This document shows, in pieces, positions 13,060 through 58,973 of a stretch of DNA of 64,000 nucleotides. The position numbers and the translations under genes were made by a program. The notes under the pieces were generated by a model. That model did no database searches. It saw nothing but the letters and a program-made list of their open reading frames with translations, and was not told the DNA's origin. The DNA is from Thalia democratica (taxonomy: Eukaryota): NCBI GenBank assembly GCA_965202585.1, contig OZ241829.1:72850001-72914000 (forward strand), written 5' to 3'. The first letter of the stretch is position 1; every line of letters starts with the position of its first letter.

Positions 13060-14781
13060 ATGATAAAACTTAGATTAAGTTTTGATGTCAGCTTAAGCAA
13101 AGTTTTTCTGGGTATAGCTGGTATATCTGCTACAACTTGTGCATTTCAGCATTTCATTTCAAAGAACAATAAACCAAAAGACTGTTTTAAATATGATTTT
13201 GTTCAAAATAAAATAGACTCTACGATAGACAATAAAGTGTCAAATCTAGTTTCTGCAAAACCAACAGTTGAGCCCAAACTCTCTAAGGATAAATCAGCTA
13301 AAGATGACTTGAAAACCAGCAAATCTATAAAAGAGTTAGATAAATTTCCACTGAAAACTAAAGGCTATATATCTTTTAGTAAAAAAGTCTTTAGAAAGAG
13401 ATCAGTTTTTAAAGGTCAATACAAGTCAATCTGTGATAGTTCTATCTCAAAATCTGAATCAAGTTATGAAAGACATATTTCAGAAAATAAAGCATACAAA
13501 GCGAATATTAACGAAGAAAGTTCAGGTCAATTAAAAGGTGAAAGCATAAACGCTCTTGATAAAAGAGCTGGGATAGGAGCTAATGCAACTACTTCTAATG
13601 ACGATTTACAAATTGTTAACGAAAAATCTAAAGTAGAAATTAAAAAAGAGCCTGTAAATGAGCGTAGTTCAGAACAACTGAATGAAAAAAGAAATAAGGT
13701 TCTTGATAAGGAAAGTAGTTTGGAAGCTGATACAAGTACCTCTAATGTCGCTTTCCAAAATGAAGAAGAAAAATGTTCAGTAAATATGAAAAAGGAGCCT
13801 GTAAATGAAGGTATTCCAGAACAACTGGATGAAAATGTAAAAGTTCTTGACGAAGAATTTAGTTCAGAAGCTGATACAAGTACTACAAGTACTTCTAATG
13901 ACGATTTGCAAAATTTTAAGGTGAAATATAAACTACATATCAAAAAGAAGCATGTAAATAAAAAAAGTCGAAAGCATTTGCAAGATGAAAAAATAAAAGT
14001 TCTTGGCAAACAAGCTAGATTAAAAGGTAATGCAAGTACTACAAAAGACGGTTTGCAAACTGTTAATGTGATACCTAAGAAGAACAAAAGAAAAAGATCT
14101 GAAAATAAAATAGATAAACTTCGTAATGACCTACTTCAACAGCAAAGTGTTTTTAAAGAAACTCTTAGATTTATAAAAACTGAAGAAGCTGAACTCTACC
14201 AAAATCTAGATCAACTGAAAAAGGGGACACCAGCAGTTACTTTGTATAACAAAGTTTGCAATCGTCAAATTGAAATCCGTGAAAAGAAGACTGACCAAAA
14301 TTACAATGAAATAATGACAGCTTTTTTTAATGATGTTTGTGATTTAAAGGAGAAAGTATGGAAAGAAGCGGGAAGTAAACCAAAATATTCCACTACTCAG
14401 TTATCAAACAAAAAACAGAAAAATCTCATGGAAAAGTTTGATTGTATACAAAATGTGTTAAACATATTTGGGCGCATAGTTGAGGTCGTTTTGAGAGAAA
14501 TTGAATGTATGCTTGAATATTTAGAAGTTGATAAATCTAAAACTAAACTTTTCTTTGAAGTTTCGCAGAATTTACATAATGAATATAAAGAATGGACGAA
14601 AAAAATTCACATAATGTTTGATGGTTATGAAAATAATTTTGCTGGAGAAGCTATATGGAAAAATTTAGCTGATATTGAGAAAAATTTTTATTGTTTATAT
14701 GACAAGTTTTTCTGTATTTTTGATAATAGCTATAAGACTTTAGTTGAAGATGAGTATCAAAAATATAAGGATAGAGGTTAG
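13060..14781 (+). CDS. Unrecognised tandem family protein, copy 1 (subtype A, 573 aa)
   Basis: Intact single-exon ORF with N-terminal hydrophobic anchor, ~4 units of the 49-aa repeat and a helical C-terminal domain shared with 26700 and 56196. AATAAA at 14904. Confidence 0.9.
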   Translation: MIKLRLSFDVSLSKVFLGIAGISATTCAFQHFISKNNKPKDCFKYDFVQNKIDSTIDNKVSNLVSAKPTVEPKLSKDKSAKDDLKTSKSIKELDKFPLKTKGYISFSKKVFRKRSVFKGQYKSICDSSISKSESSYERHISENKAYKANINEESSGQLKGESINALDKRAGIGANATTSNDDLQIVNEKSKVEIKKEPVNERSSEQLNEKRNKVLDKESSLEADTSTSNVAFQNEEEKCSVNMKKEPVNEGIPEQLDENVKVLDEEFSSEADTSTTSTSNDDLQNFKVKYKLHIKKKHVNKKSRKHLQDEKIKVLGKQARLKGNASTTKDGLQTVNVIPKKNKRKRSENKIDKLRNDLLQQQSVFKETLRFIKTEEAELYQNLDQLKKGTPAVTLYNKVCNRQIEIREKKTDQNYNEIMTAFFNDVCDLKEKVWKEAGSKPKYSTTQLSNKKQKNLMEKFDCIQNVLNIFGRIVEVVLREIECMLEYLEVDKSKTKLFFEVSQNLHNEYKEWTKKIHIMFDGYENNFAGEAIWKNLADIEKNFYCLYDKFFCIFDNSYKTLVEDEYQKYKDRG

Positions 14782-14944
14782 AATATACTGACTTTAAAAC
14801 GTTTTTAGTTTGTGATTTATCTTTGGATTAGCTGTGTTTTTTTTTTTTTTACTGGTTTTTTGTTAAATAACAACCATTCTTTTTCATTTTTAGTTGTAAA
14901 ATCAATAAAATAAATAGTTCTGGATTTTTTTTCGTTTGGTTTTG

Positions 14945-17300
14945 TTTCCATTGAGTTTAGTTTTTGTAAACAGTCTTTTTATTATAAAAAAAAGAACTTT
15001 AGTTTGTATTTAAACAATAAACACTGTGTTATATTGAGTTTTTTCTGATTTTATTTTATTAAATACTGTAAGAAAAAACTGGAACTTAAAATGTTAGATA
15101 GTTTAAAAGAACTAAAAATTTTTAAATTATATTGAATTGTGATTTCTTTAAGATTGTAAAATATTATAAACCCAAAAAACCAATTTTAGAATTATTACAA
15201 GTATAAAAAGTATTAATATTCAACAAACAAATCTCAGCAGGTAAAAAACAATTTTCAAATAGAAAAAGACCTCTGTTTCTAATTTATCAATTGTTTAGAT
15301 TTTGTAAATTTTTAACTTTTCAACTTTTAATATTTGGCACAGTGATTTTCATTACTAGATTGAAAAATGTTTTTTTTTCAGTAAAAACTTTAAACAAATA
15401 AATTACTAAACGAATAAATGTTTTTAACGATTTTTTCCGAAATTTAATTTTATGTAAATGACTGTTAGTTTTCCTATTGTATAATCAACTATACAATATT
15501 GGTTAATTTGTTCATCTTATAACTAATACATGTTTATAATATTTTACTATATCTTCAGTATATTAATACATATCATCTAAATTAGAAGCTAAAGCTTATA
15601 AAACCTCTAATAAATTTCATCTATAAAATGCGATTACTTTAGTAATCAACGTTATAAGCTCATTAAATATATTTTAAAAGTTGCACAACAAGCAACTTAC
15701 TTAGCTGACGACATAAATGAAAAATATGTAGAAATTTTATACTATACACTTATGCTATAACATTTAGGTGTAAAGTATTTAAACTGATTTTTTATACTTT
15801 TAAAATGAATTTATTTTACTTCTAACCATAGTTTCCTAGTAATCAGTTAGAAGCGGCAATAAATATAATAGTCAAAAAAAGCAATTTAACAGTTTCTCTC
15901 ATTATCATATTAAAAAAATTCTGCAAACTAAACATACAAAAAAATTAAATCAAAATCGATAACATTTATAAAAGAAATGTATTTTTACCAACTGTATTTC
16001 AGCTATTTTAATTAATATTAACTCAAATTGTTTTGTCAAAACAATTATGAATTAATGTTTAATTCAGAAAAATACAATTACTCTATCGCTTTATAAAATT
16101 TGAAATTATAAATTATTGAAAACTATAACAAAAACCATTTTCTATTTAAAATTTCAGCGAGTAGACAAATATTATAAATTTTTAGACTATCGACAGTGGT
16201 TTATATGGAATTAAGAAACTTTATGTTAGTATTTGTCAAAAAAAATGAAATTCTACATTTTTTATAATTAGTGATTAAACTAAAGCTTTTAAGAAAAATA
16301 AAAATTCTTAAAATGGGTTATATTAATTTTTATAAATGTATAGACTTATCTTTTAAAAACTAAAGTTTGAAATATAAAATGTAAATTTTTATTTTGATGA
16401 CAATTTTTATAGTTCCCTTCAACACGAAAATGTAGGCTTTTGCCGATTTTACAGCTACTGGTTTCTTTTATCTAACAAACATGTTGAACAAGTCAAAGTT
16501 ACAATTTAATGTCAATTGTAACCGGCACCTTTCAGTTAAGTTCAACTGATTATTTTATATTTTAAAAGTTTATTTATTTTTGATTTTTAAGTACAATTTT
16601 ATTTTTTATGTCAACTAATTTTAAACTAACTTGTCTTATCAAGTTAAAGTTCAGTTCGAAGCAAAAGTTGCATTCAGCCAAAACTAAGCCCTGCTATAAT
16701 CTTTGCTTATGTGAACGTTATAAAACTTTTTTGTTTATATAATAAAAACTAGGTAAATATATTTATAAATGCTTGAAGTTTGTGTAAGTTATAAACCTAA
16801 ATCGAGGTAACAAAAGAATAATATTCTATATTAACTATTGAAAATATTAAATGTTACTTAAACCTTAAAGAAATTCTTGCTTTTCATTTTGTAAAATTTA
16901 CCAGTTTTATATGTTAAAATTTTAAAAGTGTTAAAGTATTAGCCGAATAATTCATAAGTGAAGTTCACAAAGTTTTTGAAAACAAGGTGTATATTAAGCA
17001 CATTTCATTGAAACTTTTTCGTTGTACAAATTGTAATGACAAATGTTACAACTAGTTAGATATACGCATAATTCTGAATTATCATTAGAACAAAAAACAC
17101 GATGTATCGAAAGATAGTGATCTGAATGTTTAACTACAAATTAAATTAAAGCTAATACTGCTTGAGTTTTTATGGTGTTCTTTTTTAATACAGAGAAGTT
17201 TTGATAATTTTATATTTTTAAATAAAAATGATATTGTATAAGTTCATTTGATTTTTTGTAAAACAAAAACATTTAAAGTCGTTTTTAATAAATTTTAGAC
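14945..17300 (+). repeat. Segmental duplication, paralogous to ~59020-62060 (partial further copies at ~41440-42330 and ~46540-46990)
   Basis: Co-linear similarity read directly, e.g. aacactgtgttatattgagttttttctgatttt and tagttagatatacgcataattctgaattat. The 59-62 kb copy carries an extra hAT MITE. Confidence 0.8.
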
Positions 17301-17364
17301 CTTTAAGACAGTTTAGTTTAATGTATTTAAACGGTATGGTATTAAAATGGCATTGAAAATTTTT

Positions 17365-18990: not shown

Positions 18991-19018
18991 CAGGTGAGTA
19001 CTTAGTGAAATTAGTAAA

Positions 19019-20582
19019 ATGATAAAACTTCAATTTCGTTTTTATGTTAGTTTGAGCAAAGTTATTCTGAGTGTAGCTGGTATATCTGCTTCTATTTGTG
19101 CACTTCATTATTTCACTCCAAAGACCAATAAACTAAAAGGCTGTTTGAAATATGATGTCGTACAAAATAAAATTGACTAAAAGAAACACAACAAAGCGTC
19201 AAGTCTAGTTTCTGCAAAACCAAACGTTGAGCCCAAACTCACTAAGGATAAATCTGCTAAAGATGACACCATAAACAGCAAACCTGAAAACAGCTTAGAT
19301 AAATTTCAAATTAAAAGTAAAGGCTATATATGTTTTAGTAAACCAGTCTTCAGAAAAAGATCAAATTCTAAAGTTGAAAACAATTTAAACGGTGAAAGAT
19401 TAATCTCAAAGTCTGATTTAAACTGTGAAAGACAATTCTTAGAAAAGAAAGCTAACAAAGCGAGTATTAACAAAGAAAGTCTAGACCTATTGGTAGAAAA
19501 AAGTGTTAAAGTTCTTAACAATAATGTTAGTTTAAGATCTAATAAAACTACTTTTGATGAAAACTTGCAAGCTATTGGACAAAAAACTGAAATGTATAGA
19601 AAAAACGAGTCTGTAAATAAAAAAAGTCCAGACGAATTAAAAGATGAAAATATAAATGTTGTTGGAAAGGAAAATAGTTTAGAAACTGATAGAAGTACTT
19701 CTAATGACGATTTGCACATTCTTGAGGAAAAATATAAAGTAAATATTAAAAAGAAGCTTGTAAATGAAGAAAGTCCAGACCAATTGAAAGATGAAGTTAT
19801 AAAATTTCTTGACAAGAAAGCTAGTTCAAAAGGTAATTCAAATACTTCCATTGATGATTTGCAAGTTAAGAAGAAATATATAGTTGATAATAAAAAGGAG
19901 GCTAACAATAAAGTTATAAAACTTCGTAATGATTTAAATCAGCAGAACAAATTATTTGTAGAGACCTTAAAACTAATAAATGATGAACTTAAAGAGCTGA
20001 AGAATGATCTTGGTCAGTTGGACGAAGTTTCTTCAATTAATGTATTATATGATAAAATGTTGAACCGGAAAACGGAAATCCTTAAAAACTTATATAAACA
20101 AAAACGTAGTGAAGTTTTAAAACAGTTTATCCAAATATTTTCAGTATTCAGTTTAAAGTTTGGAAAAAAGCTCGATACGTTATGGTAAAAATATAATTGA
20201 AAGAAATAAAAACATTATTGATATGTTTGTAATTGTGGAGGCTATTTTATCAAATATTAAGGACTTATTTACGACAACTTTAAAAAGAGTTAGCTTTATG
20301 CTGAAGTATATGGATGAAACAGACAATAACAAAACAACTCATATCTATTATACACTAGAACAGCTTAAAAAGGATGACGATGAATGTCAAAAGATGTGTT
20401 TAAATACATTGCGGGAATTTGCAAACCTAAATAGTACTTTAAAAGAAGATGTCAATAAATATTTAGAAAGTTTTTCAAACTTGTTTGAAAAGTTGTATTA
20501 CATATGTGCTAATAGCTACAGAACTTTAGTTGAAGATCAAAAAAGTAACTATGTTTTACCGCTACGCTCTATGTTAGTTTAG
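19019..20582 (+). pseudogene. Family copy 2 (subtype B), disrupted
   Basis: ATG 19019 follows ttacAG|GTGAGT (GT at 18994). TAA at 19178-19180 where a paralog has TCA. Relative to copy 7 there is a 1-nt deletion ~20130, a 10-nt deletion ~20171 and a 1-nt deletion in the terminal A-run. Explains ORF-track fragments 19490..20188 and 20160..20582. Confidence 0.85.
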
Positions 20583-26699: not shown

Positions 26700-28448
26700 A
26701 TGATAAAACTTAGATTAAGTTTTGATGTCAATTTGAGCAAAGTTATTCTTGGTGTAGCTGGTATATCTGCTACTACTTGCGCATTTCAGTATTTCACTGC
26801 AAACAGCAAGCTAAAAGAATCTTTAATGAACGATGTTGTACAAAACAAAACAGATTCAAACAAAGACAATAAAGTTTCAAACGTAGTTTCTGGCAAACAA
26901 ACAATTGAGTTTAAATTGAATAAAGAAAAAATAGCTAATGATAATCTTATAAATAACAAACCTAAAAATGGCTTGAGAGTTTGGATCGGAGCTAATGCAA
27001 GTACTTTTAATGACGATTGTCAAAATGTTAAAAAAAAGTTCAAGGTTGATATTAACAAAGAGCTTATAAATAAAGGAGGTCAAGACCAATTGGATGATGA
27101 AAGTATAAAAGTTTTTAACCAGGAAGCTAGTTTAGAATTTAATGCAAGTACTTCAAATGAAAATTTGCTAAATGTTGAGGAAAAATCTAAAGTGGATATT
27201 AGAAACAAGCCTGTAAACGAAGGAAGTCCAGAGCAATTGAAAGGTGAAAGTATAGAATCTCTTAACCAGGAAATTGTTTTAAGAGCTAGTGGAAGTACTT
27301 CTAAAGACGACTTGCAAACTGTTGAAGAAAAATCTAAATTGTATATTAAAAAGGAACCTCTTAATAAAGGAAGTTCAGACCAGTTGAAAGACAATAATGT
27401 AAAAGTTCTTGATGAGGAAGAGAGTTTAAAAGGTAATGCAAATACCTCTAATGACGATTTGCAAAGTTCTGAGGAAAAATCTAAAAAGTATATTAATAAC
27501 GAGACTGTAAATGATGGATGTCAAGATCAATTAAAAGACGAAAGTACAAAAGCTGTTGGTAAAAAAGCTAATTTTAAAGGTAATGCAAGTTTATCTAATG
27601 ATTATTTGCAAACTGTTGAGTATAAAAGTAAAGAAGTTATTGAAAATGAGTTTGCATATGACGAAAGTCTAGACCAAAGTATAAAATTTCTTGGTAAGGA
27701 AGCTAGTTTAATAGGTAATGTAAGTACTTTAAATGATGATTCGCAAACTGTTAAGGAAAACTCTAAGAAGAACAAAATTAGTAAACTTCGTAACGATTTA
27801 CTTCAGCAGCAAACTCTTTTTGAGGAGACTCTTAGACTGATAAAAATTGAAGAAGAAGAACTTGAACAAAACCTCGATCAGCTGAAAAAAGGGACATCAG
27901 CAATTTCTTTGTATAACAAAGTTTGCAATCGTCTAACTGAAATCCGTGAAAAGAAGACCAACCAAAATTACAACGAAAATATGAAAGCTTATTTTACAGA
28001 TGTTTGTGATTTAAAGGAAAAAGTATGGAAAGAAGCGGGAAGTAAACCAAAATATTCCACTACTCAGTTAACAAACAAAAAACAGAAGAATCTCAAGGAA
28101 AAGTTTGATTGTATACAAAATGTGTTAGAAAAATGTGGGGGCTTAGTTGAGATTATTTTGAGAACAGTAAAATCTATGGTTGAATTTTTAGAAGTTGATG
28201 AACCTAAAACAAAACCTTTTTTTGAAGTTACTTATAGTTCACATGATGAAATTGATAAGTATCAGAATAAAGTTCGCATAATGTTTGATGGATATGAAAA
28301 TATGTTTAGCAGTGATGCTATATGGACGAATTTAGATAATATAATTAATAGTTTCTGTTGTTTTATTGACAAGTTTTTCTGTATTTGTAAAAATAGCTAT
28401 AAGACTTTAGTTGAAGATGAGTATCGAAAATATGATGATAGAAATTAG
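26700..28448 (+). CDS. Family copy 3 (subtype A, 582 aa)
   Basis: Intact ORF preceded by branch-point-like tgactaac (26654-26661) and ttacAG|GTGAAT (GT at 26675). AATAAA at 28577. Confidence 0.9.
   Translation: MIKLRLSFDVNLSKVILGVAGISATTCAFQYFTANSKLKESLMNDVVQNKTDSNKDNKVSNVVSGKQTIEFKLNKEKIANDNLINNKPKNGLRVWIGANASTFNDDCQNVKKKFKVDINKELINKGGQDQLDDESIKVFNQEASLEFNASTSNENLLNVEEKSKVDIRNKPVNEGSPEQLKGESIESLNQEIVLRASGSTSKDDLQTVEEKSKLYIKKEPLNKGSSDQLKDNNVKVLDEEESLKGNANTSNDDLQSSEEKSKKYINNETVNDGCQDQLKDESTKAVGKKANFKGNASLSNDYLQTVEYKSKEVIENEFAYDESLDQSIKFLGKEASLIGNVSTLNDDSQTVKENSKKNKISKLRNDLLQQQTLFEETLRLIKIEEEELEQNLDQLKKGTSAISLYNKVCNRLTEIREKKTNQNYNENMKAYFTDVCDLKEKVWKEAGSKPKYSTTQLTNKKQKNLKEKFDCIQNVLEKCGGLVEIILRTVKSMVEFLEVDEPKTKPFFEVTYSSHDEIDKYQNKVRIMFDGYENMFSSDAIWTNLDNIINSFCCFIDKFFCICKNSYKTLVEDEYRKYDDRN
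27042..27629 (+). repeat. 147-bp (49-aa) coding tandem repeat, 4 full units plus flanking partial units
   Basis: Unit starts at 27042, 27189, 27336, 27483 and 27630. Same period in copy 8 (56766, 56913, 57060). Confidence 0.9.
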
Positions 28449-31682: not shown

Positions 31683-32238
31683 ATGATAAAACTTCGACTA
31701 CGTTTTGATGTCAGTTGGAGGAAAATTATTCTGGGTGTAGCTGGTATATCTGCTACTATTTTTGCATTGCAATATTTCACTTTTAAAAACAATAAACTGA
31801 AAGGCTGTTTGATATATGATGTTGTACAAAATAAAACAGACTCAAAGAAAAACAACAAAATGTCATACGTAGTTTCTGCAAAACCATAAAAATATTATGG
31901 ATATGTATGTAATTTTTAAGGCTATTATATCTAACAGTAGGGATGTATTTAAAACTACTTTGAAAACAATTGGCTTTATGCTGAAGTATATGGATGAAAC
32001 AGACAAAAATAAAATTATTATTATCTCCAATACACTGAGAATATTAAAAAAAGATGACGATGATAATGGGAAGATGTGTTTTAAAATATTGTGTGAATTT
32101 GCAAACCAAAATAATTCTTTAGAAGATGATGCAAAAAAACTTTTAAAAAGTTACTCAATCTTGTTTGAAAAGTTTAATTACATTAGAATTAATAACTACA
32201 AAACTTTTGTTGAAGATAAAAATAAATGCTTGCTTTAA
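31683..32238 (+). pseudogene. Family copy 4 (subtype B), internally deleted: 68-aa N-terminal ORF plus out-of-frame 113-aa C-terminal ORF
   Basis: 31683..31889 encodes the anchor and 31897..32238 the distal helical domain. The repeat region and proximal domain are deleted at aaaacca|taaaaa. Junction site is taaAG|GTTAGT. Confidence 0.8.
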
Positions 32239-36343: not shown

Positions 36344-37960
36344 ATGATAAAACTTCGATTAAGTTTTGATTTCAGTTTGAGCAAAGTTATTCTGGGTGTA
36401 GCTGGTATATCTGCTACTACTTTTGCATTTCAGTATTTCATTTTAAATAACAATAAATTAAACGGATTGTTAGAGAATGATTTTGGTTTGAAGAAAAGCA
36501 TTTTAGTGTCAAATTTAGTTTCTTCAAAAACTTTGGTAGAGCCTGAAATCGGTAAAGATAACTTAGCTAAACATGAATTCAAAAACAGCAAAACTGAAAA
36601 TAGTTTAAGTTTGTTTAGAAATAAAAGTAAAAGTGTTGCCGCTCCAGTTGTAAGTAAGGAAGTAATCCGAAAGATAACGGTAAGTAACCGTGAATTCAAA
36701 TCAAACAGTGATAAGTCAATCTCAAAATCTGATCCAAACTGCGAAAAAACTATTTCAAAAATCGAATCAAGCTATGAAAAGTCAGCCTCGAAAATCGACT
36801 CAAACTGTGAGAAGTTAGTATCAAAAACTGAATTGAACTGTAAAATGCCAATCTCAGAAACTGATTTAGATTGTAGAAAATCAACTTTAAAGTGTGGATC
36901 AGACAAAACAAACGTTGATGAAGGAAGTTTAAACCAATTGAAAAACAAAAGTACAGAATTTCTTTACAGTAAAGTTTCAAGTGGGTTTAAGAAGATAGGT
37001 AACATAAAAGATGATAGCCAATTTAAAATGACGGATAAAAATACTGAATTGTTTGATAAGAATACTGATATAAACTATAAAAATTCAGTCTTAAAAACTG
37101 ATTCAAACTGCAAAAAGTCTATTTCAAAGTCTGTCCAAGGCAAAACGAATATTAATAAGGAAAGTCAAGACCAATTGTCAATTAAAAGTGTAAAAATTCT
37201 TGACAATAAAAATATTATAGCAGCAAATGCAAATACATTAAAAGAAGATTTTCAAACTTTTGAGAAAAAATCTAACGTGAATATTAAAAAAAAGCCTGAA
37301 AATAATAAAGTTGTAAAACTTCGTAATGAATTAAATGAGCAGTATATATTTTTTGAGAAGACCTTAAAACTCATAAATGCTGAACAAAAAGCACATGAGA
37401 ATAATATTGGCCAGTTGGAGAAAAATATTTCTGTTGCTTCGTTGTATAAAGTAATATCAAACCGTAAAAATGCAATTTTAGAAGATCTAAATAAACCAAA
37501 GGGTAACAGAATTTTGAAACAGTTTTTTCAAAGTATATTTAGCTTACAGCTAAAGGTTTGGAAAAAAGCGAGTGCATGTTTAAAATACAAAAGTAAATTA
37601 TCCGATGAAAAAAATAAAAGTATTAAGGATACGTTTGATAATATAAAAGCTTTATTAGACATATGTGATGATACAATCAAAATCATTTTGAAAAGAATTA
37701 ATATATCGCTAAAGTATATTGATGAAACTGATAAAAATGAAATAAATAATATTAATAAGTCACTTAATGAGATAAAAATGATGGTGAAGACTATGATGCA
37801 GAAGTTGAAAAATACATTTCAAGAGTTAGGAAAAGAAAATATTATTTTAGATGATGATATAAATGACATTTCAGATAGCTTGAAAAACTTGTTTTGCAAG
37901 TACAATCAAGTTTGTTCTAATTTCTACAAAATTTTATCTAAAGGTTTAATCACTAAATAA
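36344..37960 (+). CDS. Family copy 5 (divergent subtype B, 538 aa) with an expanded 11-aa Cys-periodic repeat
   Basis: Intact ORF; taacAG|GTGAGT 25 nt upstream (GT at 36319); same N-terminus and KLRN..L..Q C-domain start as the other copies. Confidence 0.9.
   Translation: MIKLRLSFDFSLSKVILGVAGISATTFAFQYFILNNNKLNGLLENDFGLKKSILVSNLVSSKTLVEPEIGKDNLAKHEFKNSKTENSLSLFRNKSKSVAAPVVSKEVIRKITVSNREFKSNSDKSISKSDPNCEKTISKIESSYEKSASKIDSNCEKLVSKTELNCKMPISETDLDCRKSTLKCGSDKTNVDEGSLNQLKNKSTEFLYSKVSSGFKKIGNIKDDSQFKMTDKNTELFDKNTDINYKNSVLKTDSNCKKSISKSVQGKTNINKESQDQLSIKSVKILDNKNIIAANANTLKEDFQTFEKKSNVNIKKKPENNKVVKLRNELNEQYIFFEKTLKLINAEQKAHENNIGQLEKNISVASLYKVISNRKNAILEDLNKPKGNRILKQFFQSIFSLQLKVWKKASACLKYKSKLSDEKNKSIKDTFDNIKALLDICDDTIKIILKRINISLKYIDETDKNEINNINKSLNEIKMMVKTMMQKLKNTFQELGKENIILDDDINDISDSLKNLFCKYNQVCSNFYKILSKGLITK
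36707..36904 (+). repeat. 33-bp (11-aa) coding repeat, 6 units, plus 2 more at 37076 and 37109
   Basis: Units start at 36707, 36740, 36773, 36806, 36839 and 36872, e.g. CEKTISKIESS, CEKLVSKTELN, CKMPISETDLD. Confidence 0.85.
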
Positions 37961-39822: not shown

Positions 39823-41353
39823 ATGATAAAACTTCGAATAAGTTTTGATGTTAGTTTGAGCAAAGTTGTTCTAGGTGTAGCTGGTATATCTGCTACATAT
39901 TGTGCATTTCAGTATTTAATTTCAACGAATAATAACCTTAAGGGCTCTTTAAAGATATATTTTGTACAAAATAAAACAGATTCTGAGAAAAACAAAAACA
40001 AATCATATCTAACTTCTGCTAAACCTACAAATGAGCCAAAAATGTGCAATAAGGCATCAGTTAGCAAGTATAAATCAAAATTAAACTGCGAAAAATTAAT
40101 CTTAAAAACTGATTTTAACTGTGAAAATTCAAACTCAAATTGTATTGCAGTAAATAGATATATAAATGAAGGTAGTCCAGAACAGTTGAAAGATAAAAAA
40201 TTAAAAGTAGTTAGTTTAGAAACTAGTGCATTTACTTCTAAAAATTTAGAAAAATCAAAAGAAACTAATGATGAAGACCAAAACAAAATGACGGCTAAAA
40301 CTATTAAACATCTCAATAAGAGAACTGATTTGAAATGTAATATGTCAAATTTGATGTCTAATTCAAACTGCGAAAAACCAATCTCAAATTGTGAACAAAA
40401 CAGTGAAAAGAAAATCTCAGAAATTTAATCCGAAAGAGTAAGTAATATGAATAAGGAAAGTGGTAAACAAATGACTTGAAAAAGTATGGAACCTTTTGAT
40501 AAACAGTTAGTAGCTATTACTAGTACTTCACATAAATATTTTCAAACCGATGCGAATTAAAATAGATCTGAGACTAAAAATCGAACTGAATTACAACTTA
40601 AAATTCTTCGTAAGGACTTAATGGAGCACAAAATATTATTGAAGCAGCTTTTTGAACTCATAAATAATGAAAAAAAAAGAGCTTGAGAACAATCTTGATC
40701 TATTGGAAAAAGGTACTTCAGTTGCTAAACTGTGTAGTAATATATGCAATCCACTTAAACTAGTCCATGAAAAATTTAATAATCAAAAGTCTAAGGAACT
40801 TTTGACACAAGTTTCTTTAAGTTTTTGTGATATAAAGCAATTAGTATGAAAAGAATCAGTACACCATTTAAAATATTTTTCCACTTTATCGGATTATAAG
40901 CATAAAAAAACCAAGGAATGTTTGACTGTATGAAAACTATATTGAAAAGCTACCTAACTCTGAAGATCCTTTTTTAGGTGAAACCGGGTTAGTAAAGTTG
41001 CAATTTTTGTCAATAAATTATTAATTATTGAAAAACTATGGGGATTTAGTTGAGATTGTTTTGTGATCATTTAAGTTTATGCTGGAATACATTAGTATAG
41101 ATGCGTCTAAAGCAAGCTTGTATTTTAAAAAACTCAATGATTTAAAAGCTTGTCAATCGAAACGTTTGAAATGTTTTGTAACTATAAAAGTTCAAGCCAG
41201 TATCCTTTTGTGAAAGACGTTGTTGAAAAAATAGAAATTGTTTTGCAAGGTTGATAAGTGAACTTAATTGCATTTCCGAAAGTTATTATTAAAGTTACTT
41301 TAGTTGCAGATGAATATGAAAAGTGTGTTGAAAATGAAGAAGTTATTGATTAG
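39823..41353 (+). pseudogene. Family copy 6, decayed (open for 201 aa, then many stops and frameshifts)
   Basis: N-terminus conserved; C-domain remnants continue to TAG 41351-41353. Upstream acceptor is mutated to ttacAA|GTGAGT. Contains a 77-bp insertion. Confidence 0.85.
40949..41025 (+). mobile_element. 77-bp insertion with 9-bp TSD carrying a degenerate minimal hammerhead motif
   Basis: TSD tattgaaaa at 40940-40948 and 41026-41034 interrupts the region homologous to QNVLEKCGGLVEI. CTGAAGA 40960-40966, cct/agg stem, GAAACCGG 40980-40987, ctaac/gttag stem I. Confidence 0.55.
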
Positions 41354-44790: not shown

Positions 44791-46155
44791 ATGATTAAAC
44801 TTAGAATAAGTTTTGATGTTAGTTTGAGAAAATTTATTCTGGGAATAGCTGGTATATCTGCTACTATTTGTGCATTTTAGTACTTTTCTTCTCAAAATAT
44901 TAAAATAAAAGGCTCTCTGAAGTACGATTTTGAAAAAAACGGAGAAGGTTCTAAGATAGACAAAAAAATGTCAAATTTAGTTTCTGCAAAATCGACAGTT
45001 GAGCCCAAACTCACCAAAGATAAAACCAAAAAACCTGAAAACGGCTTAGGTATATTTTCTAAAAGAAGTAAAGGCTACTTATCTTCTAGTAAACAAGTCT
45101 TCAGAAAGACAACAGATTGTAAGAGTGAATACAACTTAAACTGTGAAAGATCAGTCTTAAAATCTGATTTAAACTTTAAAGGACAAATCTTACAAAATAA
45201 ATCATACAAAGCGAATATTAATAAAGAAGGTCCGGGCCAATTAGCAGAAGAAAATATTAAAGTTCTTAATAAAGTTATTTTAGGATCTAACGAAAGTACT
45301 TTTAATGGAATATCGCAAGCAGTTGGAGAAAAAACTAAAATGGAAACTAAAAAGGATCCTCTAAATGAAGAAAGTTCGGACCGATTGAAAGATGATATTG
45401 TAAAATTTTTTGACAAGAAAGCTAGTTTAAAAGGTAATACAAATACTTCAAATGATGTTTTACAGGTTAAGAAGAAATCTAAAGTGGATATTAAAAAGGA
45501 GCCTAACAATAATAAAGTTAGAAAACTTCGTAATGATTTAAATCAGCAGCACAAATTATTTGTAGAGACCTTAAAACTAATAAATGATGAACTTAAAGAG
45601 CTGAAGAATGATCTTGGTCAGTTGGACGAAGTTTCTTCAATTAATTTGTTATATGATAAAATGTTGAACCGGAAAACGGAAATCTTTAAAAACTTATATA
45701 AACAAAAACGTAGTGAAAGTTTGAAAAAGTTTACCTCAAATATTTTCAGTATACAGCTTAAAGTTTGGAAAAAAGCCAGTAACCGTTCGATGCGTTATGG
45801 TAAATATACAATCGAAAGAAATAAAAACACTATTGATATGTTTGTAATTGTAGAGGCTATTTTATCAAATATTAAGGACTTATTTACGACAACTTTAAAA
45901 AGAGTTAGCTTTATGCTGAAGTATATGGACAAAAACAAAACAATTATTATCTATTATACACTAGAAAAGATTAAAAAGGATGATGATGAATGTCAAAAGA
46001 TGTGTTTAAATACATTGCGGGAATTTGCAAACCTAAATAGTTCTTTAAAAGAAGATGTCAATAAATTTTTAGAAAGTTTTTCAAATTTGTTTGAAAAGTT
46101 GTATTACATATGTGCTAATAGCTACAGAACTTTAGTTGAAGATCAAAAAAAGTAA
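44791..46155 (+). pseudogene. Family copy 7 (subtype B): one nonsense codon, otherwise intact 454-codon frame
   Basis: ATG 44791 follows ttacAG|GTCAAT. TAG at 44878-44880 where paralogs have CAG/CAA (Gln30). In-frame Met at 44968 opens the 395-aa ORF in the track. AATAAA at 46269. Confidence 0.85.
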
Positions 46156-50400: not shown

Positions 50401-51242
50401 TTATTTTGTTTAAATTAGAAGAAGTGAAATGGGTCTATAGTTTCCTACTTAAGTTTTTAATCCTGATTTAAAAAATGGTATTACTTTAAAAAATTTTAAA
50501 CTACTTGCATAAACATTTTCAGAGAATGTCCTCTATAACTATAGCTGTCATACTAAAAAAAAAGCAAAATTATTGTAAATCATCAGATATCTTAAGTTAT
50601 CCGTAAACACAACTTTCACATTTATTGTTTTTAATTCAAGTTAAAGAAATAAAGTAGTTACAAAAATAGTTTTCATTCATTTTATTTCATACTTCATAAA
50701 AAATGAAAAAAAAAGTATAGAAGTTTAAAATTTTCTATTTAATCACTATTAATTTTGTTTAATATTATAACTTTTCACTAATTAACTAACACTTAAATAC
50801 AGTGGTGCTAAAAGTAATTATTTTAAACAAATTATATAAATAAATTTAAAATATTTATGACAACACTTACAATGTAATATTTTAAACATTTAATTTAATG
50901 AAAAATTTTAAAACAGTTTTGTATAGTACAAAAGTTAGCTATCAAAAATATTTGTAATAATCTGAACAAAGTTTAATCATAAAAACCACTTATATTAATT
51001 TTATTTCAAAAAACTTTTATGACATTATGTTTTAAATAATTGTTTTTACTGTTTAGTTAATTTTTACAGTAAAAATCATTTTATCACCATAAAATTGTAC
51101 AAAAATAACAAAACAATTAGCAATTTAATGTTATTAAATTTTTCTAGTGTTCTTTTTTTAAAAGAGCGACAGTTTGTTTGTAAACTCGCTTCAGTACTTC
51201 GTACTTAAGCCCGCTTAGTTAGATCACAACAGCGGTTTCTCG

Positions 51243-51300
51243 CGACTATTCCTGCCTGATGAGTACTAATTAGGACGAAAGCGGTCGTAGGATTGACTCG
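51243..51300 (+). ncRNA. Minimal type I hammerhead ribozyme motif
   Basis: Stem I tcctgc 51250-51255 / gtagga 51287-51292; CTGATGA 51256-51262; stem II gtac-taatta-ggac (one A-G mismatch); GAAA 51277-51280; GTC triplet 51284-51286; helix III reduced to AGCGGT. Confidence 0.7.
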
Positions 51301-51496
51301 GATGCTGTTATTGTTGATCGTGCGGTGAAGTTCGTTGTTAATATTCAATGGCATAAAATATCTCAACTTGTTGATGATGGCTGAAATATATACTAGCTAA
51401 AACAAATTTATGAAATAAAAACAGAAAATTCTAATAGTTTTAAGTCACTTATAAAAAATTAAAAAATGATTTTTGCATAACTTTTAAATACTAAAC

Positions 51497-54400
51497 CAGG
51501 GTTTCCCAAAGTGGGCGATATCGCCCCCCTGGGGGCGATTTTAGTAATTTGGGGGGCGATAATTAGTAAGGGTGCGAAAGGGTGGGCGATAACTAGTAAG
51601 AGGGCGAAAAGGGGGCGATTTTAAAATTTTGGGCTGTCATAAGATTTTTACTTTTTTTCTTGCTATTTTACTAATTTTAGGTTGCTATTAATTATTTGAC
51701 CCTGAGGTAAAACTTAAACAAAAAAGATAATTTTATTTATGTAAAAAATATAAAAAAAAATCAAGTGCTTATGACTCCTACTTTCAAGTAAATACTATAT
51801 TTTCATTCATATATTTCCTTATTTAAAAATTACATAGATCATAGACGATTTGAATCCCTCTCACTATTTTATAACCAGACAGATATGTTATTTGGGATCA
51901 TAAATGGTAAAAATTTATGTTATTTATTTTTAACTATAACCTCATGATATTTCCAGTTGTTTTTTGAAAAGTCACTAAGTTAGACTAAGAAATAAAACTA
52001 TACAGGGTTGCCAACTTACCTAGAAACCTGGAATTTGACAATTTAGCCAAAAACAAACCTGGAAAAAATCTGGAATTTTTAACAATTTTAACATTTTAAG
52101 TAGTAAAATTTAGATTCGACACAAAAAAGCTATCATATAAATAAAAATATGGATTCCTTCGAGGCAGATACTCTTGAAGTAAACGACTAACAGAAAACCT
52201 TCTCAGACTTACAAACTGACCTTGAACTTAAAGTAAATTCTTCCAAAGAACGATATGTAAGCTTATGTACTCAACAAAAACTTAGGCAAAAGTATCCAAT
52301 CATTTGAGAGGCATTTAGATTGTTGTTTATAGCTTTTCCTTCTAGCTATATTGTTGAGAAAGCTTTCAGTTCAGTTATCAACATCTTGAGCAAAATATCT
52401 TATCTAGATATACATAAAGGAGGTGACTTAAGGCTCTATTTTACTGATTAAGAATCAGATTAGAAAAACTTGCAAGCAGTCATGAATCTCATCCTTCACA
52501 TTATATTAGACTTTAGTAGCAGACAATATTTTATGAAAGTATTTTAATTTTATTTGATCTTTTAAAACATTTCTTATTCAACCTGGTTTGTATTGTATTT
52601 AAGTAGTCTTTTTATAATAACAACTGTATTAAACTATTTATTCTAAAACAGGTTTGCATAATGCCTAATAAATATTAATTACGGTAAACTTCCTCTTGAG
52701 TTCAACTTTTTACCCAAAAAAAATTGCAAACTTATATTTTCTTAAATTTAACTAAAGTAAATCCTATTACTAGCTAAATATTAATAAAACAAATTATATA
52801 TAATATTTTATAGCTTATATAGATCTATTTTTTTAAATTAAAGTTTGTTTTATGTTTTAGTGGATTTCATGTTTTTTCATAACATTATTGCCTATAACAC
52901 ATTGAAATTTGTCATTTTGTAAAAAAAATGTGGTAATAATTTTTTAAGTTGCACTTTTTGATTTTTTTTAAAGTCCGAACTCAAGCGGAAGTCTACTATA
53001 TTTATTAAATGGTTTATGTTTTAAAGTTGTTAATAGTTTTATTTTGACCTGGTTAATTTTGTAGTTCATATTCGTCGTTTTACATTACACTAAAAGTTTT
53101 TATAGCATAGTGATTAAAATACTTGTTTGAAAGACCTTTATTTGACAGGTTTTTGTTATTACTTGTTTAATCTGTATATAAATTATATCACTGTATAACT
53201 ATTATCTGATTGTAAAATTTTGATAACCATTAAAGTTTTTGTTTCTAAAAATATTTTTTTGGTTTTAAAAGAGTATAAATTTAAGACCTTTATTTGAAAT
53301 GACTTCTACGTTTTCACTTAAAAGTTTCTTAAACTTAATATTATTTTCTAACTTAATTTACTATTGTTAAAATTTTTTTGTCATTTAAGGAGTTTTAAAC
53401 TGTTAATACAACTAATTTTTGTTTTATCTTAGTTCAATATTTATTAGCAATTGGAATATACTTAGTTTATTTAAATATTTCAACACTAGCTTTTAGTTTT
53501 TCACTATTTTTCTCTGTTAAACTATCATAGGCTAATAGCTAGAAAAAAAACTTTTTAAACAGAATAAAATAAGCCATAAAAAAGACTGCTACAATTACAA
53601 AACAAAATTTTACCTAGTTAAAAGTTTTTTTTAATTGATTACTTTCTGTTCACAGCATTAACTGTTAAACATTGGATTTTTTTTTTTGAATTTAAATAAA
53701 GAAAAAATATATTAGAATTAAGGTTTAGTTCCCTAGAGATTATTCCCAGTCAAATACTATTTCATGGTATTCTAATACGAAAGAAATAGTTTAAAAAGTT
53801 TAAAATTAAAGTTTTAACTTTACAACTAACTTGCTTACAATATATCTTAGCATTGAAATTAATAAATTTACTGCATTAACTTGATGAAACCACTTTTCAT
53901 GTGAGATAATCAACCAGTCGGTCAAACTTCCTCAAACTAGATCAGAAATTATTTTTCAATTTTTATTTTATTATGTGTAAAATAAATTGTTCATTTTTTT
54001 ATGGTTTTTAATCTCTGGTATAGTTATTTTAGAATATGCCTATTTATAAAGTAATTTAAGTATTTTGTTAGGGTTAAATAAGTTACTTAGTATTAACTTC
54101 TAAATATCCAAAATTCGTTATATGAGATATTATTATAATGTCAGGTTTCATTTAAGATTTCAGATAGGTAACGTACTGCTCAGATCCAGTCGCAGATCCA
54201 GTCGAATTTCGACCCGCTAAGTAAATTGAAAACTACTTGTGCAAAATAAATAAAATTTAGTTTTAGATACTTACTATTTTGAAATACACTTTCATTTCGT
54301 TTTCAGTTCACAATAGTATTTCCTAGATCACAATAATACTAAATAATTTTATTACAGTTTTGCTCGAGTTTTTTAATTTTCTTATTTGTTATTTTTTTAA

Positions 54401-54829
54401 ATCATGCAGCCCGAAACTACATTTTTTAACGAGTTGAAACTAGAAAAGATTTTTTAGTAAATATGAGTTGCTCACTACAAAAGTTGTCCACCACTGACCT
54501 AAAAGTTTTTATTAGTTTCAAAACAGTTCATATTTAAACAGGATTGATTACAGATTACACAAGGCTTTTTAATATTTAAGTATTTTAATACACTTTACTG
54601 GGCTTCTAAGAAAATAACTGTAAATTATTTTCTAAAGCACTGTAAACTACTTTGAACACATAAGTGCGTGCATGAGAAGTACTAGACTAAATTACATTTC
54701 GAACACAAATTTTTTTATCTCAAAAGCTTGTAGTAAAAAGAAAAACTACTTTGTAAAATCGTGGGGGGCGATTTTTTTTTCAAATTACTGAAAAGGGGGC
54801 GATTTAGTAAATGAGTTTGGGAAACCCTG
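51497..54829 (+). mobile_element. hAT (Charlie/Buster-like) DNA transposon, internally deleted with nested fragments, 3333 bp
   Basis: Perfect 14-bp TIRs cagggtttcccaaa / tttgggaaaccctg. Perfect 8-bp TSD tactaaac (51489-51496, 54830-54837). gggggcgat subterminal repeats. Empty site in the paralogous spacer at ~25403. Confidence 0.93.
52170..52503 (+). pseudogene. Charlie/Buster-type hAT transposase C-terminal remnant
   Basis: Reads LLFIAFPSSYIVEKAFSSVINIL...GDLRL...SHESHPSH with stops and frameshifts. Confidence 0.85.
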
Positions 54830-56195: not shown

Positions 56196-58067
56196 ATGAT
56201 AAAACTTAAATTTTGTTTTGATGTCAGCTTTACCAATATTATTCTGGGTGTAGCTGGTATATCTGCTACAGTTTGTGCATTGCAGTATTTCATTTTAAAC
56301 AAGAGCAATCTACAAGGCTCTTTAAAAAATGATGTTGTACGAAATAAAACAGACTCTGATAAAAAGAAAAAAGTGTCAAACCTAGTTTCAGCAAAACAAA
56401 ATATTAACTCAAAACTCAGTAAAATCACATCAGCTACAGATGACTTCAAAAGCAACAAACATGAAAATGACTTAGATAAGTTTTCAAATAAAAGTAAAGG
56501 TTTTATCACTCCTATTAACGTAGTTTTTAGAAAGTCATCAGATTTTAAAGGTAAATATAATGCAAACTTTGAAAAATCTATCTCAAGTTCTGATTTAAAC
56601 TGTGTTGGACCAATTTCTGAAAATGAATCATGCAAGGCAAATATTACTGAAGTACGTTCAGACCAATTAAAAGATGAAAGCATAAAGACTCTTGATGAGA
56701 TAGCTGGTATTAGAGCTAATGTAATAACTTCTAATAACGGTTTACAAACTGTTGAGGAAAAGTATAAAGTAGATTATAGAAAGGAGTTTGTAAATAAAGG
56801 AAGTCCAGACCAATTGAACGATGAAAGAATCGAGGTTCTTGATAAAAAAAATAGTTTAGAAGATGATACAAGTACTTCTATTGACGATTTGCAAAATGTT
56901 GAGGAAAAATCTAAAGTAGGTATTGAAAAGGAGCCTGTGAATAAAGGAAGTCCAGACCAGTTGAACGTTGGACGAATTGAGGTTTTTTGTGCGGAAAATA
57001 AATTAGAAGACGATACAAGTGCCTCTATTGACGATTTGCAAAATGTTGCGGAAAAATCTAAAGTAGATATTAAAAAGGAGCCTGTAAATGAAGGTAGTTT
57101 AGTACAATTAAAAGATGAAAATGTAAAAGTTCTTGACAAAAAAATTAGTTCAGAAACTGATACAATTACTACAAGTACTTCTAATGACGATTATCAAAAT
57201 GTTAAGGTAAAATATAAAGTAAATACTAAAAAGAAGCCTGTAAATAAAAAAAGTCAAGATCATTTGATAGATAAAAATATAAAAGTTCTTGGCAAAGATG
57301 CTAGATTAAAAGGTAATGCCAGTAATACAAATGACGGTTCGCAAACTGTAAAGGTGAAACTTAAGAAGAACAAAAGAAAAAAATATGAAAATAAAATAGA
57401 AAAACTTCGTAACGATTTAATTCAACAGCAACGTTTTTTTGAGGAGACTCTTAGATTAATTAAAATTGAAGAAAAAGAACTCGACCAAAACCTCAGTAAG
57501 ATGAAAAAAGGGACATCAGCACTTTCTTTGTATAATAAAGTTTGCAATCGTCAGATTAATATACGAGAAAAGAAAACCAAACAAAATTACAATGAAAATA
57601 TGAAAGCATTTTTTACAGATGTTTGCGATTTAAAGGAGAAAGTATGGAAAGAAGCGGGAAATAAACCAAAATATTCCACTACTCAGTTATCAAACAAAAA
57701 ACAGAAAAATCTCAAGGAAAAGTTTGATTGTATGCAAAATGTTTTAAACATATTTGGGCGCATAGTTGAGATTGTTTTGAGAGAAATTAAATTTATGCTT
57801 GAATATTTAGAAGTTGATAAATCTAAATCAAAACTTTTCTTTGAAGTTTCGCTAAATTTACATAATGAATATGAAGAATGGTCGAAAAAATTTCACTTAA
57901 TGTATGATGGTTATGAAAATAATTTTGGCAGAGAAGCTATATGGAAAAATTTAGATGATATAAAGGATAGTTTTTATTGTTTATTTGACAAGTTTATCTG
58001 TATTTGGGATAATAGCTATAAGACTTTAGTTGTAGATGAGTATCAAAAATATAAGAATAGAGGTTAG
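56196..58067 (+). CDS. Family copy 8 (subtype A, 623 aa)
   Basis: Intact ORF; ttacAG|GTGAGT 25 nt upstream (GT at 56171); ~5 repeat units; shares a 9-bp duplication (TTSTS) with copy 1. AATAAA at 58184. Confidence 0.9.
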   Translation: MIKLKFCFDVSFTNIILGVAGISATVCALQYFILNKSNLQGSLKNDVVRNKTDSDKKKKVSNLVSAKQNINSKLSKITSATDDFKSNKHENDLDKFSNKSKGFITPINVVFRKSSDFKGKYNANFEKSISSSDLNCVGPISENESCKANITEVRSDQLKDESIKTLDEIAGIRANVITSNNGLQTVEEKYKVDYRKEFVNKGSPDQLNDERIEVLDKKNSLEDDTSTSIDDLQNVEEKSKVGIEKEPVNKGSPDQLNVGRIEVFCAENKLEDDTSASIDDLQNVAEKSKVDIKKEPVNEGSLVQLKDENVKVLDKKISSETDTITTSTSNDDYQNVKVKYKVNTKKKPVNKKSQDHLIDKNIKVLGKDARLKGNASNTNDGSQTVKVKLKKNKRKKYENKIEKLRNDLIQQQRFFEETLRLIKIEEKELDQNLSKMKKGTSALSLYNKVCNRQINIREKKTKQNYNENMKAFFTDVCDLKEKVWKEAGNKPKYSTTQLSNKKQKNLKEKFDCMQNVLNIFGRIVEIVLREIKFMLEYLEVDKSKSKLFFEVSLNLHNEYEEWSKKFHLMYDGYENNFGREAIWKNLDDIKDSFYCLFDKFICIWDNSYKTLVVDEYQKYKNRG

Positions 58068-58780
58068 AATATACTGACTTAAAAACGTTTTTGGTTTGTG
58101 ATTTATCTTTGTTTTAGCTGTGTTTTTTTTATTTACTTGATTTTTGTTTAAAAAAAAACATTCTTTTCCTTTTTTAGTAGTTAAATAAACAATAAATATA
58201 GATATATAAATAGCCTTAATGTGTTTCTTTAGTTTTGAGAATTCGAGTTTGAAAAATTTAAACGAGTTTAGTGAAAAAAACTTGATTGTTAGCTTATACC
58301 TTAATTATATTTTGCTAAATTTATACCAAGTTTTAAATTATAGCAATTACCTTTAATAATAAATTACTAGACTAGGAATTTTCTATTAAATATATACATA
58401 TTCGTTATAGAAAGTTATCATAAAGTTATTTTAACAACAACTTTTAAATGTATAATTGAATTTAAATAACGTTTTTAAAAAAAAAAGTTTTACTTGGTAA
58501 GTCATGATAAAAATCCTTAACGTAATTATCAAAAAAAAATTGAAAAGAACTATATGATTTAAAACTACTACTTAGTTAATTAATTTAAAATCTTAAATGT
58601 TTGTTTTAGTAACTTAATGCACTTAGCTCAATTCTACTAAAAAATAAGTTAGTTATTTTAAAACTTATCTCTTAATTTTTAACTTGTAGCCACTTACTTT
58701 AAATTGTAATCTATACCGTTGTAAACTTAAAGGTTATTTTCACAACGACATTTATTAAACAACATAAGTTTTATTTAGGT

Positions 58781-58973
58781 CAGAAGCTCGTCAGGCGAAA
58801 TGTTTGGAAATGTTTTATAGTCATAAAAGTTCAAACCAATATCCTTTTGTAAAAACCGCTGTTAATTAAATAGAAAATACTGTTGCATGTTTTATCAGTG
58901 AACTTAATTGCATTTCTAAAATGTTGCAAATGAATATCAAAAGCATATTGAGGCTGAAGAAGTTGATGTTTAA
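58781..58973 (+). pseudogene. 3' relic of a ninth copy (copy-6-like C-terminus)
   Basis: Co-linear with 41145-41353, e.g. cagtgaacttaattgcatttc and gaatatcaaaagcatattgaggctgaagaagtt. Confidence 0.75.

Follow-up and report, generated by a model that had tools for sequence, protein, structure and literature searches.

A tandem array in Thalia democratica belongs to an unnamed family of single-exon genes with a conserved N-terminal module, a repeat stalk and a helical head

What does a dense run of related reading frames on one strand of the Thalia democratica genome encode, and where would its products act in the cell? The window analyzed here, a 64-kb stretch of DNA, had been described in an initial annotation as carrying a single-strand tandem family of at least nine copies, four intact and five broken. 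A tblastn search queried with the four intact copies plus 18 other family proteins recovered nine copies in this arrangement, with family sequence on the + strand only and intact frames of 573, 582, 538 and 623 aa. All ORFs of at least 90 aa in the window are family members or antisense shadows of them, and the mixture of intact and broken copies bears out the birth-and-death pattern originally proposed.

The first copy (13060..14781, + strand, 573 aa) is intact and displays the complete architecture: an N-terminal module, a stalk with 147-nt (49-aa) tandem repeats (13578..13883, +) and a head domain of six long helices (14083..14778, +). Its DNA-conserved 5′ module (13035..13161, +), composed of a leader of ~25 nt after an acceptor-like TTACAG and of codons 1–34, also opens the copies at 19019, 26700, 31683, 36344, 39823, 44791 and 56196. 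The three other intact copies lie at 26700..28448 (+, 582 aa), with a 147-nt repeat tract at 26990–27619 in which TRF counts 4.3 copies; at 36344..37960 (+, 538 aa), in a divergent subfamily characterized by 11-aa Cys-containing stalk units and a head sharing ~30% identity with that of the first copy; and at 56196..58067 (+, 623 aa), with 147-nt repeats at 56727–57330 and near-identical counterparts at C5:72.504, 73.003 and 73.155 Mb. Among the broken copies, 19019..20582 (+) is interrupted by a stop (codon 54) and by a frameshift (near codon 385), and is a mosaic whose 5′ half is closest to the copy at 13060 and whose 3′ half is closest to the copy at 44791. The copy at 31683..32238 (+) is internally deleted, retaining the N-terminal 68 codons and the last ~113 codons of the head, and 39823..41350 (+) begins with 201 open codons followed by several stops and frameshifts. 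A single premature TAG at codon 30 interrupts 44791..46155 (+), the rest being open to the normal stop, and the ninth copy is a C-terminal stub (58783..58964, +). An AATAAA lies 85–148 nt past the stop codon in all seven cases checked, as the annotation had stated for most copies, but this is weak evidence because the motif is frequent (one per 237 nt on the + strand) and the flanks were duplicated along with the genes.

The window covers part of a larger array, which spans 1.16 Mb (C5:72.43–73.59 Mb) and includes at least 55 loci with a head. Genome-wide, 92 matches to the N-terminal module were found, 29 of which are outside the array, on other chromosomes or far away on the same one; the earlier count of at least nine copies in 46 kb is accurate for the window and understates the family. 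All ten outside loci that we fetched are single ORFs of 414–738 aa, and nine have the full architecture, whereas L056 stops early and has an incomplete head. Outside heads are related to array heads in a profile-profile comparison (E = 6.8e-6), and superfamily proteins share an overall identity of only 16–32%. Within this genome-wide superfamily, the array forms one branch. Complete open frames were confirmed for 18 members, spread over subfamilies that are old and deeply diverged; over half of the loci are broken, and several copies are nearly identical (pS 0–0.04). The family is real, previously unnamed and made of single-exon genes. It would have grown by tandem and segmental duplication, with chimeras arising through exchange within repeats and copies being lost via stops and frameshifts.

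Our searches for relatives agree with the initial view of an unrecognized, lineage-restricted family. A profile search of 1.84 billion proteins returned only 45 matches, all unnamed proteins; ten of them that were looked up, and five contigs that were traced, all have their origin in ENA marine metagenome assemblies, Tara Oceans for the most part, and open-frame relatives occur on metagenome contigs with only ~72% DNA identity to the T. democratica genome. In Pfam, 35 proteins (4 full-length, 17 heads, 5 divergent and 9 outside members) scored at best 13–19 bits against gathering cut-offs of 22–31. Queries of PDB sequence profiles, made with two alignments, brought up nothing beyond weak matches of coiled-coil type; the best, 3fle (E = 2.9e-4 over 70 residues), was judged spurious. 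Foldseek comparison of the head with the PDB returned nothing at E 0.001 or better (best E 0.056), and an ESM Atlas search by shape, two ESM Atlas feature searches and a wide VIA-align comparison retrieved generic helical bundles only. A word search with the N-terminal module of an outside member produced no match, and pattern scans of IMG/VR and JGI metagenome contigs produced no relative. A transposon or viral origin found no support in a Pfam match to an RT, transposase or capsid, in any other window ORF of at least 90 aa or in a relative in IMG/VR. No confident match to a characterized family or to a transposon or viral ORF thus emerged from Pfam, PDB profiles, Foldseek or IMG/VR. Exact look-ups of two intact proteins, made for expression, gave no record, and we found nothing on the family in the literature. 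The family is known so far only from the T. democratica genome and unnamed marine-metagenome contigs.

The last ~230 aa, which had been predicted to be all-helical, are indeed so when the head of the first copy is modelled alone with AlphaFold2 (pLDDT 83, pTM 0.82). The six helices form two consecutive three-helix units, between which no relation, and hence no internal duplication of the head, was detected. Cysteine positions differ between subfamilies, with 1 to 8 per head. This 230-residue six-helix bundle would be the working part of the protein, probably binding a ligand or partner. Its shape resembles PhoU (VIA-align Z 9.2 to 2i0m, 163 residues, rmsd 3.6) and the Habc domain of syntaxin/Sso2 (Z 8.0–8.3, 111–120 residues, rmsd 2.4–2.7), and the head profile matches syntaxin-1A weakly (E 0.05 or worse). 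Neither match is significant, Z scores of 8–9.2 being below the ~13 that the tool's own note gives as informative for helical bundles and the top matches being designed bundles.

The repeat stalk recognized in the initial annotation is real, disordered and charged, with 147-nt units encoding 49 aa; in the full-length model, residues 1–350 have a pLDDT below 50, with a helix at 13–35. Lys and Arg account for 15–21% and Asp and Glu for 12–19% of array-member stalks, and Pro, counted in eleven proteins (P0052 and ten outside members), for 1–4%. Array members show no excess of N-glycosylation sequons (110 observed versus 114 expected). The only sequon-rich case is the outside member L054, whose stalk consists of short repeats with many N-x-T sequons (23 observed versus 11 expected); sequon enrichment was judged uninformative as a test of topology. 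The Pro-poor, Lys/Glu-rich composition and the expected number of sequons in the array do not match a mucin-type stalked surface protein. The stalk, 170–450 residues long, may serve as a flexible spacer whose length shifts by gain or loss of 49-aa and 11-aa repeats.

The N-terminal module of ~34 aa has M1, K3, D9, G18 and G21 invariant throughout the superfamily, and I2 and K14 nearly so. Residues 2–13 alternate between polar and hydrophobic; they are followed by a Gly/Ala/Ser-rich hydrophobic helix of ~18–20 residues containing G18 and G21, and then by a Lys/Asn-rich flank, with one to four Lys within ~8 residues past the helix in all members read. The annotation had described a conserved, moderately hydrophobic N-terminus, and the Kyte-Doolittle 19-residue maximum of 1.4–2.2 agrees with it; a segment of this hydrophobicity is borderline as a stable membrane span in the ER. 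As read from the sequences, the N-terminus also shows an n/h/c pattern, with a basic n-region, an h-region of 8–10 residues and I/T/V-C-A at −3/−1 before F29. Conservation continues beyond every plausible cleavage site and reaches into the basic flank. The module is a likely functional domain, its fixed residues being much more specific than a generic signal peptide would require.

Within the array, the ~25-nt leader and codons 1–34 are conserved at the DNA level, without any excess at third positions. As read by eye, an acceptor-like YAG occurs ~10–30 nt from the ATG in 29 of 29 leaders, whereas the GTGAGT after TTACAG, considered as a splice donor and rejected, is carried by only 10 of 29 modules; the site was therefore read as an acceptor. 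Rfam gave no match over the 5′ module. Given that folding yielded only a 5-bp hairpin, with z-scores of −1.8 to +1.4 for single sequences and −2.9 for the consensus fold, we do not invoke a structured RNA. Gene conversion, selection on the nucleic acid, or the two together may maintain the DNA uniformity of the array module.

Pairwise dN/dS values are 0.3–0.7 for the head, even where dS is saturated, and about 0.55–1.0 for the stalk, and therefore indicate relaxed or moderate purifying selection. The diversifying pressure invoked initially is not supported by these values, which do not demonstrate positive selection, and nothing points specifically to immunity or allorecognition, gamete interaction or a toxin-antidote system. 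One Tara protein nests inside a head subfamily of the T. democratica genome, indicating that heads are maintained and not merely churning; the head subfamilies seem to be older than a species split.

Could the locus be amplified DNA that mostly lacks function? An ORF-bearing segment would then have multiplied through segmental duplication, or as a selfish or ampliconic element; its frames would be open only through the youth of the copies, and uncollapsed haplotypes could account for part of the copy number. The prevalence of broken loci, the near-identical copies, a stalk dN/dS close to 1 and the two proteins without record would all fit. This explanation is nonetheless highly improbable given that head constraint persists at saturated dS, that complete frames survive in 18 members of old subfamilies, that open-frame relatives are found on divergent metagenome contigs and on other chromosomes, and that transposon or viral domains and IMG/VR matches are absent. 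Nor are the duplicate blocks simple haplotigs, since they are of different ages and do not have the same copies broken. We favor, with a probability of roughly 0.55, the interpretation that the genes encode single-pass membrane-tethered display proteins, in which the N-terminal module would be a retained targeting and anchoring element, not cleaved, and the head would bind something. Its main rival is a cleaved signal peptide: the proteins would be secreted and soluble, with an unusually conserved signal and with stalk and head extracellular, for example in mucus, tunic, feeding net, or gamete or immune interfaces. Tandemly amplified, taxon-restricted families with an N-terminal hydrophobic segment are usually secreted, which counts against tethering, as do the fit of the segment to a textbook cleavable signal with small residues at −3/−1, its marginal hydrophobicity, the stalk of L054 and the generic nature of the fold match. 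Tandem amplification with birth and death likewise suits secretion. In conotoxin and amphibian antimicrobial-peptide superfamilies, the signal stays fixed and the mature part diverges; the T. democratica family resembles them in that its N-terminal hydrophobic module is conserved more than any other part, synonymous sites included, and in its multigene tandem turnover. It differs from them in encoding proteins of 400–740 aa without a cysteine framework, in not having the module on a separate exon and in keeping specific residues invariant superfamily-wide. The persistence of K3, D9, K14, G18 and G21 over very deep divergence and the conservation beyond the putative cleavage site argue against secretion, which we regard as doubtful; cysteines that are not conserved between subfamilies, a Lys/Glu-rich stalk that is Pro-poor where counted, and sequons not enriched in the array are hints of a non-secreted character.

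As to the membrane and the topology, an anchor in an organelle or the ER with the head facing the cytosol is possible, though we hold it at less than even odds, and a type II topology with a luminal or extracellular head is rather unlikely. A Tom20/Tom70-type signal anchor in the mitochondrial outer membrane (or peroxisomes), locations already raised in the initial annotation, is a tentative sub-case of membrane tethering in which stalk and head would be cytosolic. The N-terminal helix resembles those of Tom20, Tom70 and OM45 in being moderately hydrophobic and Gly/Ala/Ser/Thr-rich, with an aromatic end, basic residues next and the protein bulk C-terminal; the sequence hallmark of Tom20/Tom70, a moderately hydrophobic N-terminal span with basic residues just after, is present. 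Non-conserved cysteines, a charged disordered stalk and a helical head also look intracellular. Against such an anchor, the N-flank of 14 residues has a net charge of +2 to +3 as read from the sequences, so that an N-out orientation is not favored by the difference in charge between the two sides of the segment, and neither Arm/DUF634 nor another known cytosolic domain was found. Unlike Tom20, Tom70 and OM45, the family has no TPR or other shared domain, and its N-flank is longer and charged, with an invariant Asp. Armcx/Armc10 are lineage-specific, intronless, tandem genes of placental mammals, and the likeness to them lies in lineage-restricted, tandem, single-exon coding sequences whose proteins run from a basic-flanked N-terminal membrane anchor through a disordered linker to a C-terminal domain that is all-helical. 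By contrast, no T. democratica member gives an Arm or DUF634 signal, the head is a six-helix bundle and not an Arm solenoid, the stalk has 49-aa and 11-aa repeats, and the copies are many more.

Among the taxon-restricted gene families visible in the T. democratica genome, this is one of the largest, and searches by sequence, profile and fold gave it no relative. If its N-terminal module is a specific sorting or assembly signal, it would open a new way into the cell biology of a chordate lineage that has been little studied; if the proteins are simply secreted structural components, this would be an ordinary orphan family. The contrast within the array between a 5′ module frozen as DNA, a nearly neutral stalk and a constrained head provides a clean natural case for telling gene conversion apart from selection on nucleic acid. 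As a long shot, the 34-residue module could be a new lineage-specific anchor that both targets an organelle and oligomerizes, such that ~90 genes would coat one compartment with interchangeable helical heads on flexible tethers; the DNA identity of the array 5′ module could be a regulatory device instead of a by-product of gene conversion. For the coated compartment, mitochondria are one example and a secretory organelle in the feeding apparatus another; the regulatory device might be, for instance, a small-RNA target common to the copies, or a choice element close to the promoter that gives one-of-many expression.

We carried out a tblastn search of the window with intact members as queries and recovered nine family copies, all on one strand. 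Four are intact (13060-14781, 26700-28448, 36344-37960 and 56196-58067) and share this strand with the broken ones, which are 19019-20582 (stop at codon 54, frameshift further on), 31683-32238 (internal deletion), 39823-41350 (multiple stops and frameshifts), 44791-46155 (one TAG, at codon 30) and 58783-58964 (a C-terminal stub). The copy number, strand, coordinates and division into four intact and five broken copies given in the initial annotation are thus correct. All ORFs of at least 90 aa in the window, which has a G+C content of 24%, are family members or their antisense shadows. An AATAAA hexamer lies 85-148 nt 3′ of the stop codon at all seven stops checked, an observation that says little because this strand has one such hexamer per 237 nt and the flanks were duplicated with the genes.

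The family is nevertheless much larger than the initial annotation stated. A six-frame search of the animal's genome with the head gave 66 matches, corresponding to about 55 loci after merging, nearly all located at C5:72.43-73.59 Mb; the others are on unplaced contig C1297 and, in the form of a single decayed remnant, on C7. Among the loci fetched, 18 complete open frames were confirmed. The copies from 13060 to 44791 belong to a segmental duplication whose other part lies about 154 kb upstream, at G000:C5:72.70-72.75 Mb, where at least five window copies have counterparts (pS of 0.006-0.07 between partners, with a single intact partner in one pair). The 623-aa copy is repeated as well, at 72.504 Mb, at 73.003 Mb and in inverted orientation at 73.155 Mb. 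Although some duplicates may be haplotig artefacts, the array duplicates are of different ages (pS 0-0.07) and do not share the same set of broken copies, which argues against simple artefacts of this kind. The array genes are mosaic in structure. Copy 13060 most resembles copy 19019 in its 5′ half (80.6%) and copy 56196 in its 3′ half (84.8%); in the 3′ half of copy 19019, copy 44791 comes closest (84.2%). The remnant on C7 (locus L044, G000:C7:38988500-38991500, minus strand, approximately 1039-1729) is a frameshifted head relic, closest to the metagenome proteins P0002 and P0008 (28-29% identity).

The anatomy proposed earlier, a conserved N-terminus followed by a repeat stalk and an all-helical head, holds in the light of the repeat units and of AlphaFold2 models. 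The first 34 or so residues of all copies form a nearly identical module (N-module), whose Kyte-Doolittle maximum over 19 residues is 1.4-2.2, and the same measure revealed no second hydrophobic segment in family proteins. The stalk contains 147-nt (49-aa) tandem units and, in some subfamilies, also 11-aa units with one Cys each. In the full-length model, residues 1-350 have a pLDDT below 50, a helix spans residues 13-35 and the C-terminal domain is confident; a separate model of the last 232 residues, built with 17 homologues, consists of six long helices (pLDDT 83, pTM 0.82). The Foldseek comparison that the initial annotation had suggested returned no match to the head at E 0.001 or better, and shape comparison with the Atlas gave TM scores of at most 0.5, normalised by query. 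An exhaustive VIA-align search ranked designed bundles highest (Z 10.4), with PhoU at Z 9.2 and the Habc domain of syntaxin/Sso2, which matches the head's second half, at Z 8.0-8.3, scores that the tool's own calibration indicates are uninformative for helical bundles. A profile search of the PDB weakly echoed syntaxin-1A (E 0.05). No relationship between the two halves of the head was detectable when they were compared with each other. We therefore call the head no more than a six-helix bundle and assign it no affinity.

The family is real, and searches for relatives elsewhere indicate that it is undescribed in the resources covered. No Pfam family came near threshold for the members searched. 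With the head as query, a word search of 5.8 billion proteins recovered three matches. Full HMMER profile searching of 1.84 billion representatives yielded 45, mostly short fragments, to which a profile of full-length superfamily members added one. One of the 45, P0047, was rejected as an unrelated coiled-coil protein. All ten representatives looked up are unnamed ENA records, and all six contigs traced are marine metagenome assemblies (four in PRJEB4352, one TARA-labelled scaffold and one other ENA assembly); no relative emerged when IMG/VR and JGI metagenome contigs were scanned by pattern. The metagenome contigs do not originate from this assembly: L002 shares just 71-73% DNA identity with the array, and the DNA match of L049 is confined to the 130-nt 5′ module. 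A tree of the heads groups P0004, from a metagenome, with two array members (ultrafast bootstrap/SH-aLRT 100/99), so that the head subfamilies would be older than the species split if the P0004 contig comes from another species.

Within the animal's own genome, a whole-genome search using only the first 40 residues as protein query matched 92 places, 29 of them beyond the array: on C1 (39.1 and 89.0 Mb), C2 (4.36, 14.99 and 65.1 Mb), C4 (100.2 Mb), C5 (21.97, 67.45 and 77.2-78.8 Mb), C8 (57.1 Mb), C9 (23.5 and 43.8-44.1 Mb) and the unplaced contig C350. Ten of the 12 outside loci fetched contain a single ORF of 414-738 aa, and nine of these ten keep the family order of parts, L056 stopping before the head is complete; the ORFs of L063 and L064 are truncated (93 and 326 aa). 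When profiles of the outside C-terminal domains and of the array heads were compared with hhalign, they aligned collinearly across 127 columns (E 6.8e-6, probability 85%). Overall identity across the superfamily is 16-32%, with M1, K3, D9, G18 and G21 invariant and I2 and K14 nearly so; in residues 2-13, hydrophobic and polar side chains alternate, as read from the sequences. The 738-aa outside member at L054 (G000:C2:65133000-65136100, minus strand, ORF 597-2810) has a stalk of approximately 8-aa units of the type E-N-x-x-[ST]-T-P-V, with 23 N-x-S/T sequons compared to 11 expected.

The module is uniform as DNA within the array. Between array subfamilies, pN and pS are 0.137 and 0.139 over the first 34 codons, compared to 0.33 and 0.50 in the head. 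Variability among 29 distinct modules is 0.075, 0.056 and 0.067 at codon positions 1, 2 and 3, with no third-position excess, and at codons 35-40 third-position variability rises to 0.36; about 25 nt of leader also fall within the conserved tract. Distance from the consensus is no greater for the modules of broken or partial copies, pooled with two from metagenomes, than for those of intact copies (12.9 and 11.7 differences per 127 nt, respectively). In the L002 module, all three differences over 102 nt are nonsynonymous; the module of the more distant L049 has about seven synonymous and six nonsynonymous ones. A DNA search with the module gave no matches other than in the array, on C421 and at C5:73.74 Mb; beyond the array, the module is conserved as protein only. 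We found no convincing RNA structure in the 5′ module and no Rfam match over it. The most parsimonious explanation combines strong constraint on the protein with homogenisation by gene conversion within the array, to which a constraint at the nucleic acid level may be added. An acceptor-like YAG, usually TTACAG, was read by eye about 10-30 nt 5′ of the ATG in 29 of 29 leaders; an automatic tally placed AG exactly at −26 in 19 of the 29.

Nei-Gojobori estimates of head dN/dS are 0.31-0.67 between subfamilies, where dS is saturated, and 0.22-0.62 within them; for the stalk, comparisons with sufficient substitutions give 0.55-1.0. In the heads of the youngest duplicates there are a few nonsynonymous changes and no synonymous ones; these counts (1 to 5) are too small to interpret. 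Gene-wide positive selection is therefore not demonstrated, and these gene-wide tests do not bear out the diversifying pressure suggested earlier.

We favour the interpretation that the N-module is a retained, uncleaved anchor, with a probability of roughly 0.55. Specific residues are invariant though the rest of the superfamily has diverged, conservation runs beyond the putative cleavage site into the Lys-rich flank, and G18, G21, A24 and A28 form a small-residue face of the helix-packing kind. A cleaved signal peptide, which we consider rather unlikely, would fit the n/h/c layout, the small residues at −3/−1 and the marginal hydrophobicity of the module; amplified, taxon-restricted families are usually secreted, a prior that also favours cleavage. 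As to the side on which the head lies, cysteines are not conserved in family proteins, the stalk is Lys/Glu-rich and, where counted, Pro-poor, and sequons are not enriched apart from one outside member. These three features lead us to lean towards a head facing the cytosol, against which stand the net charge of +2 to +3 of the N-flank and the sequon-rich stalk of that outside member.

Other elements lie in the window, where an Rfam scan found nothing at gathering score. A long, near-perfect inverted repeat at 11764-11916 matched many unrelated miRNA-precursor models on both strands, all below gathering scores (maximum 60.7 versus 74 bits), and did not match any hammerhead model; its appearance is that of a MITE-type hairpin and not of a particular RNA gene. 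Inside a GC-rich island at 51161-51345, the segment 51250-51292 matched hammerhead ribozyme type I below threshold (20.2 bits versus a gathering score of 34, E 0.087). An interspersed repeat of about 600 bp sits between family genes at 7598-8199, 22741-23333, 24033-24606 and 50557-51144 (67-87% identity between copies), one copy stopping just short of the island at 51161. Short tandem repeats occupy 3615-3757 (32-nt unit, 4.5 copies) and 51552-51619 (G-rich 30-nt unit, 2.3 copies).
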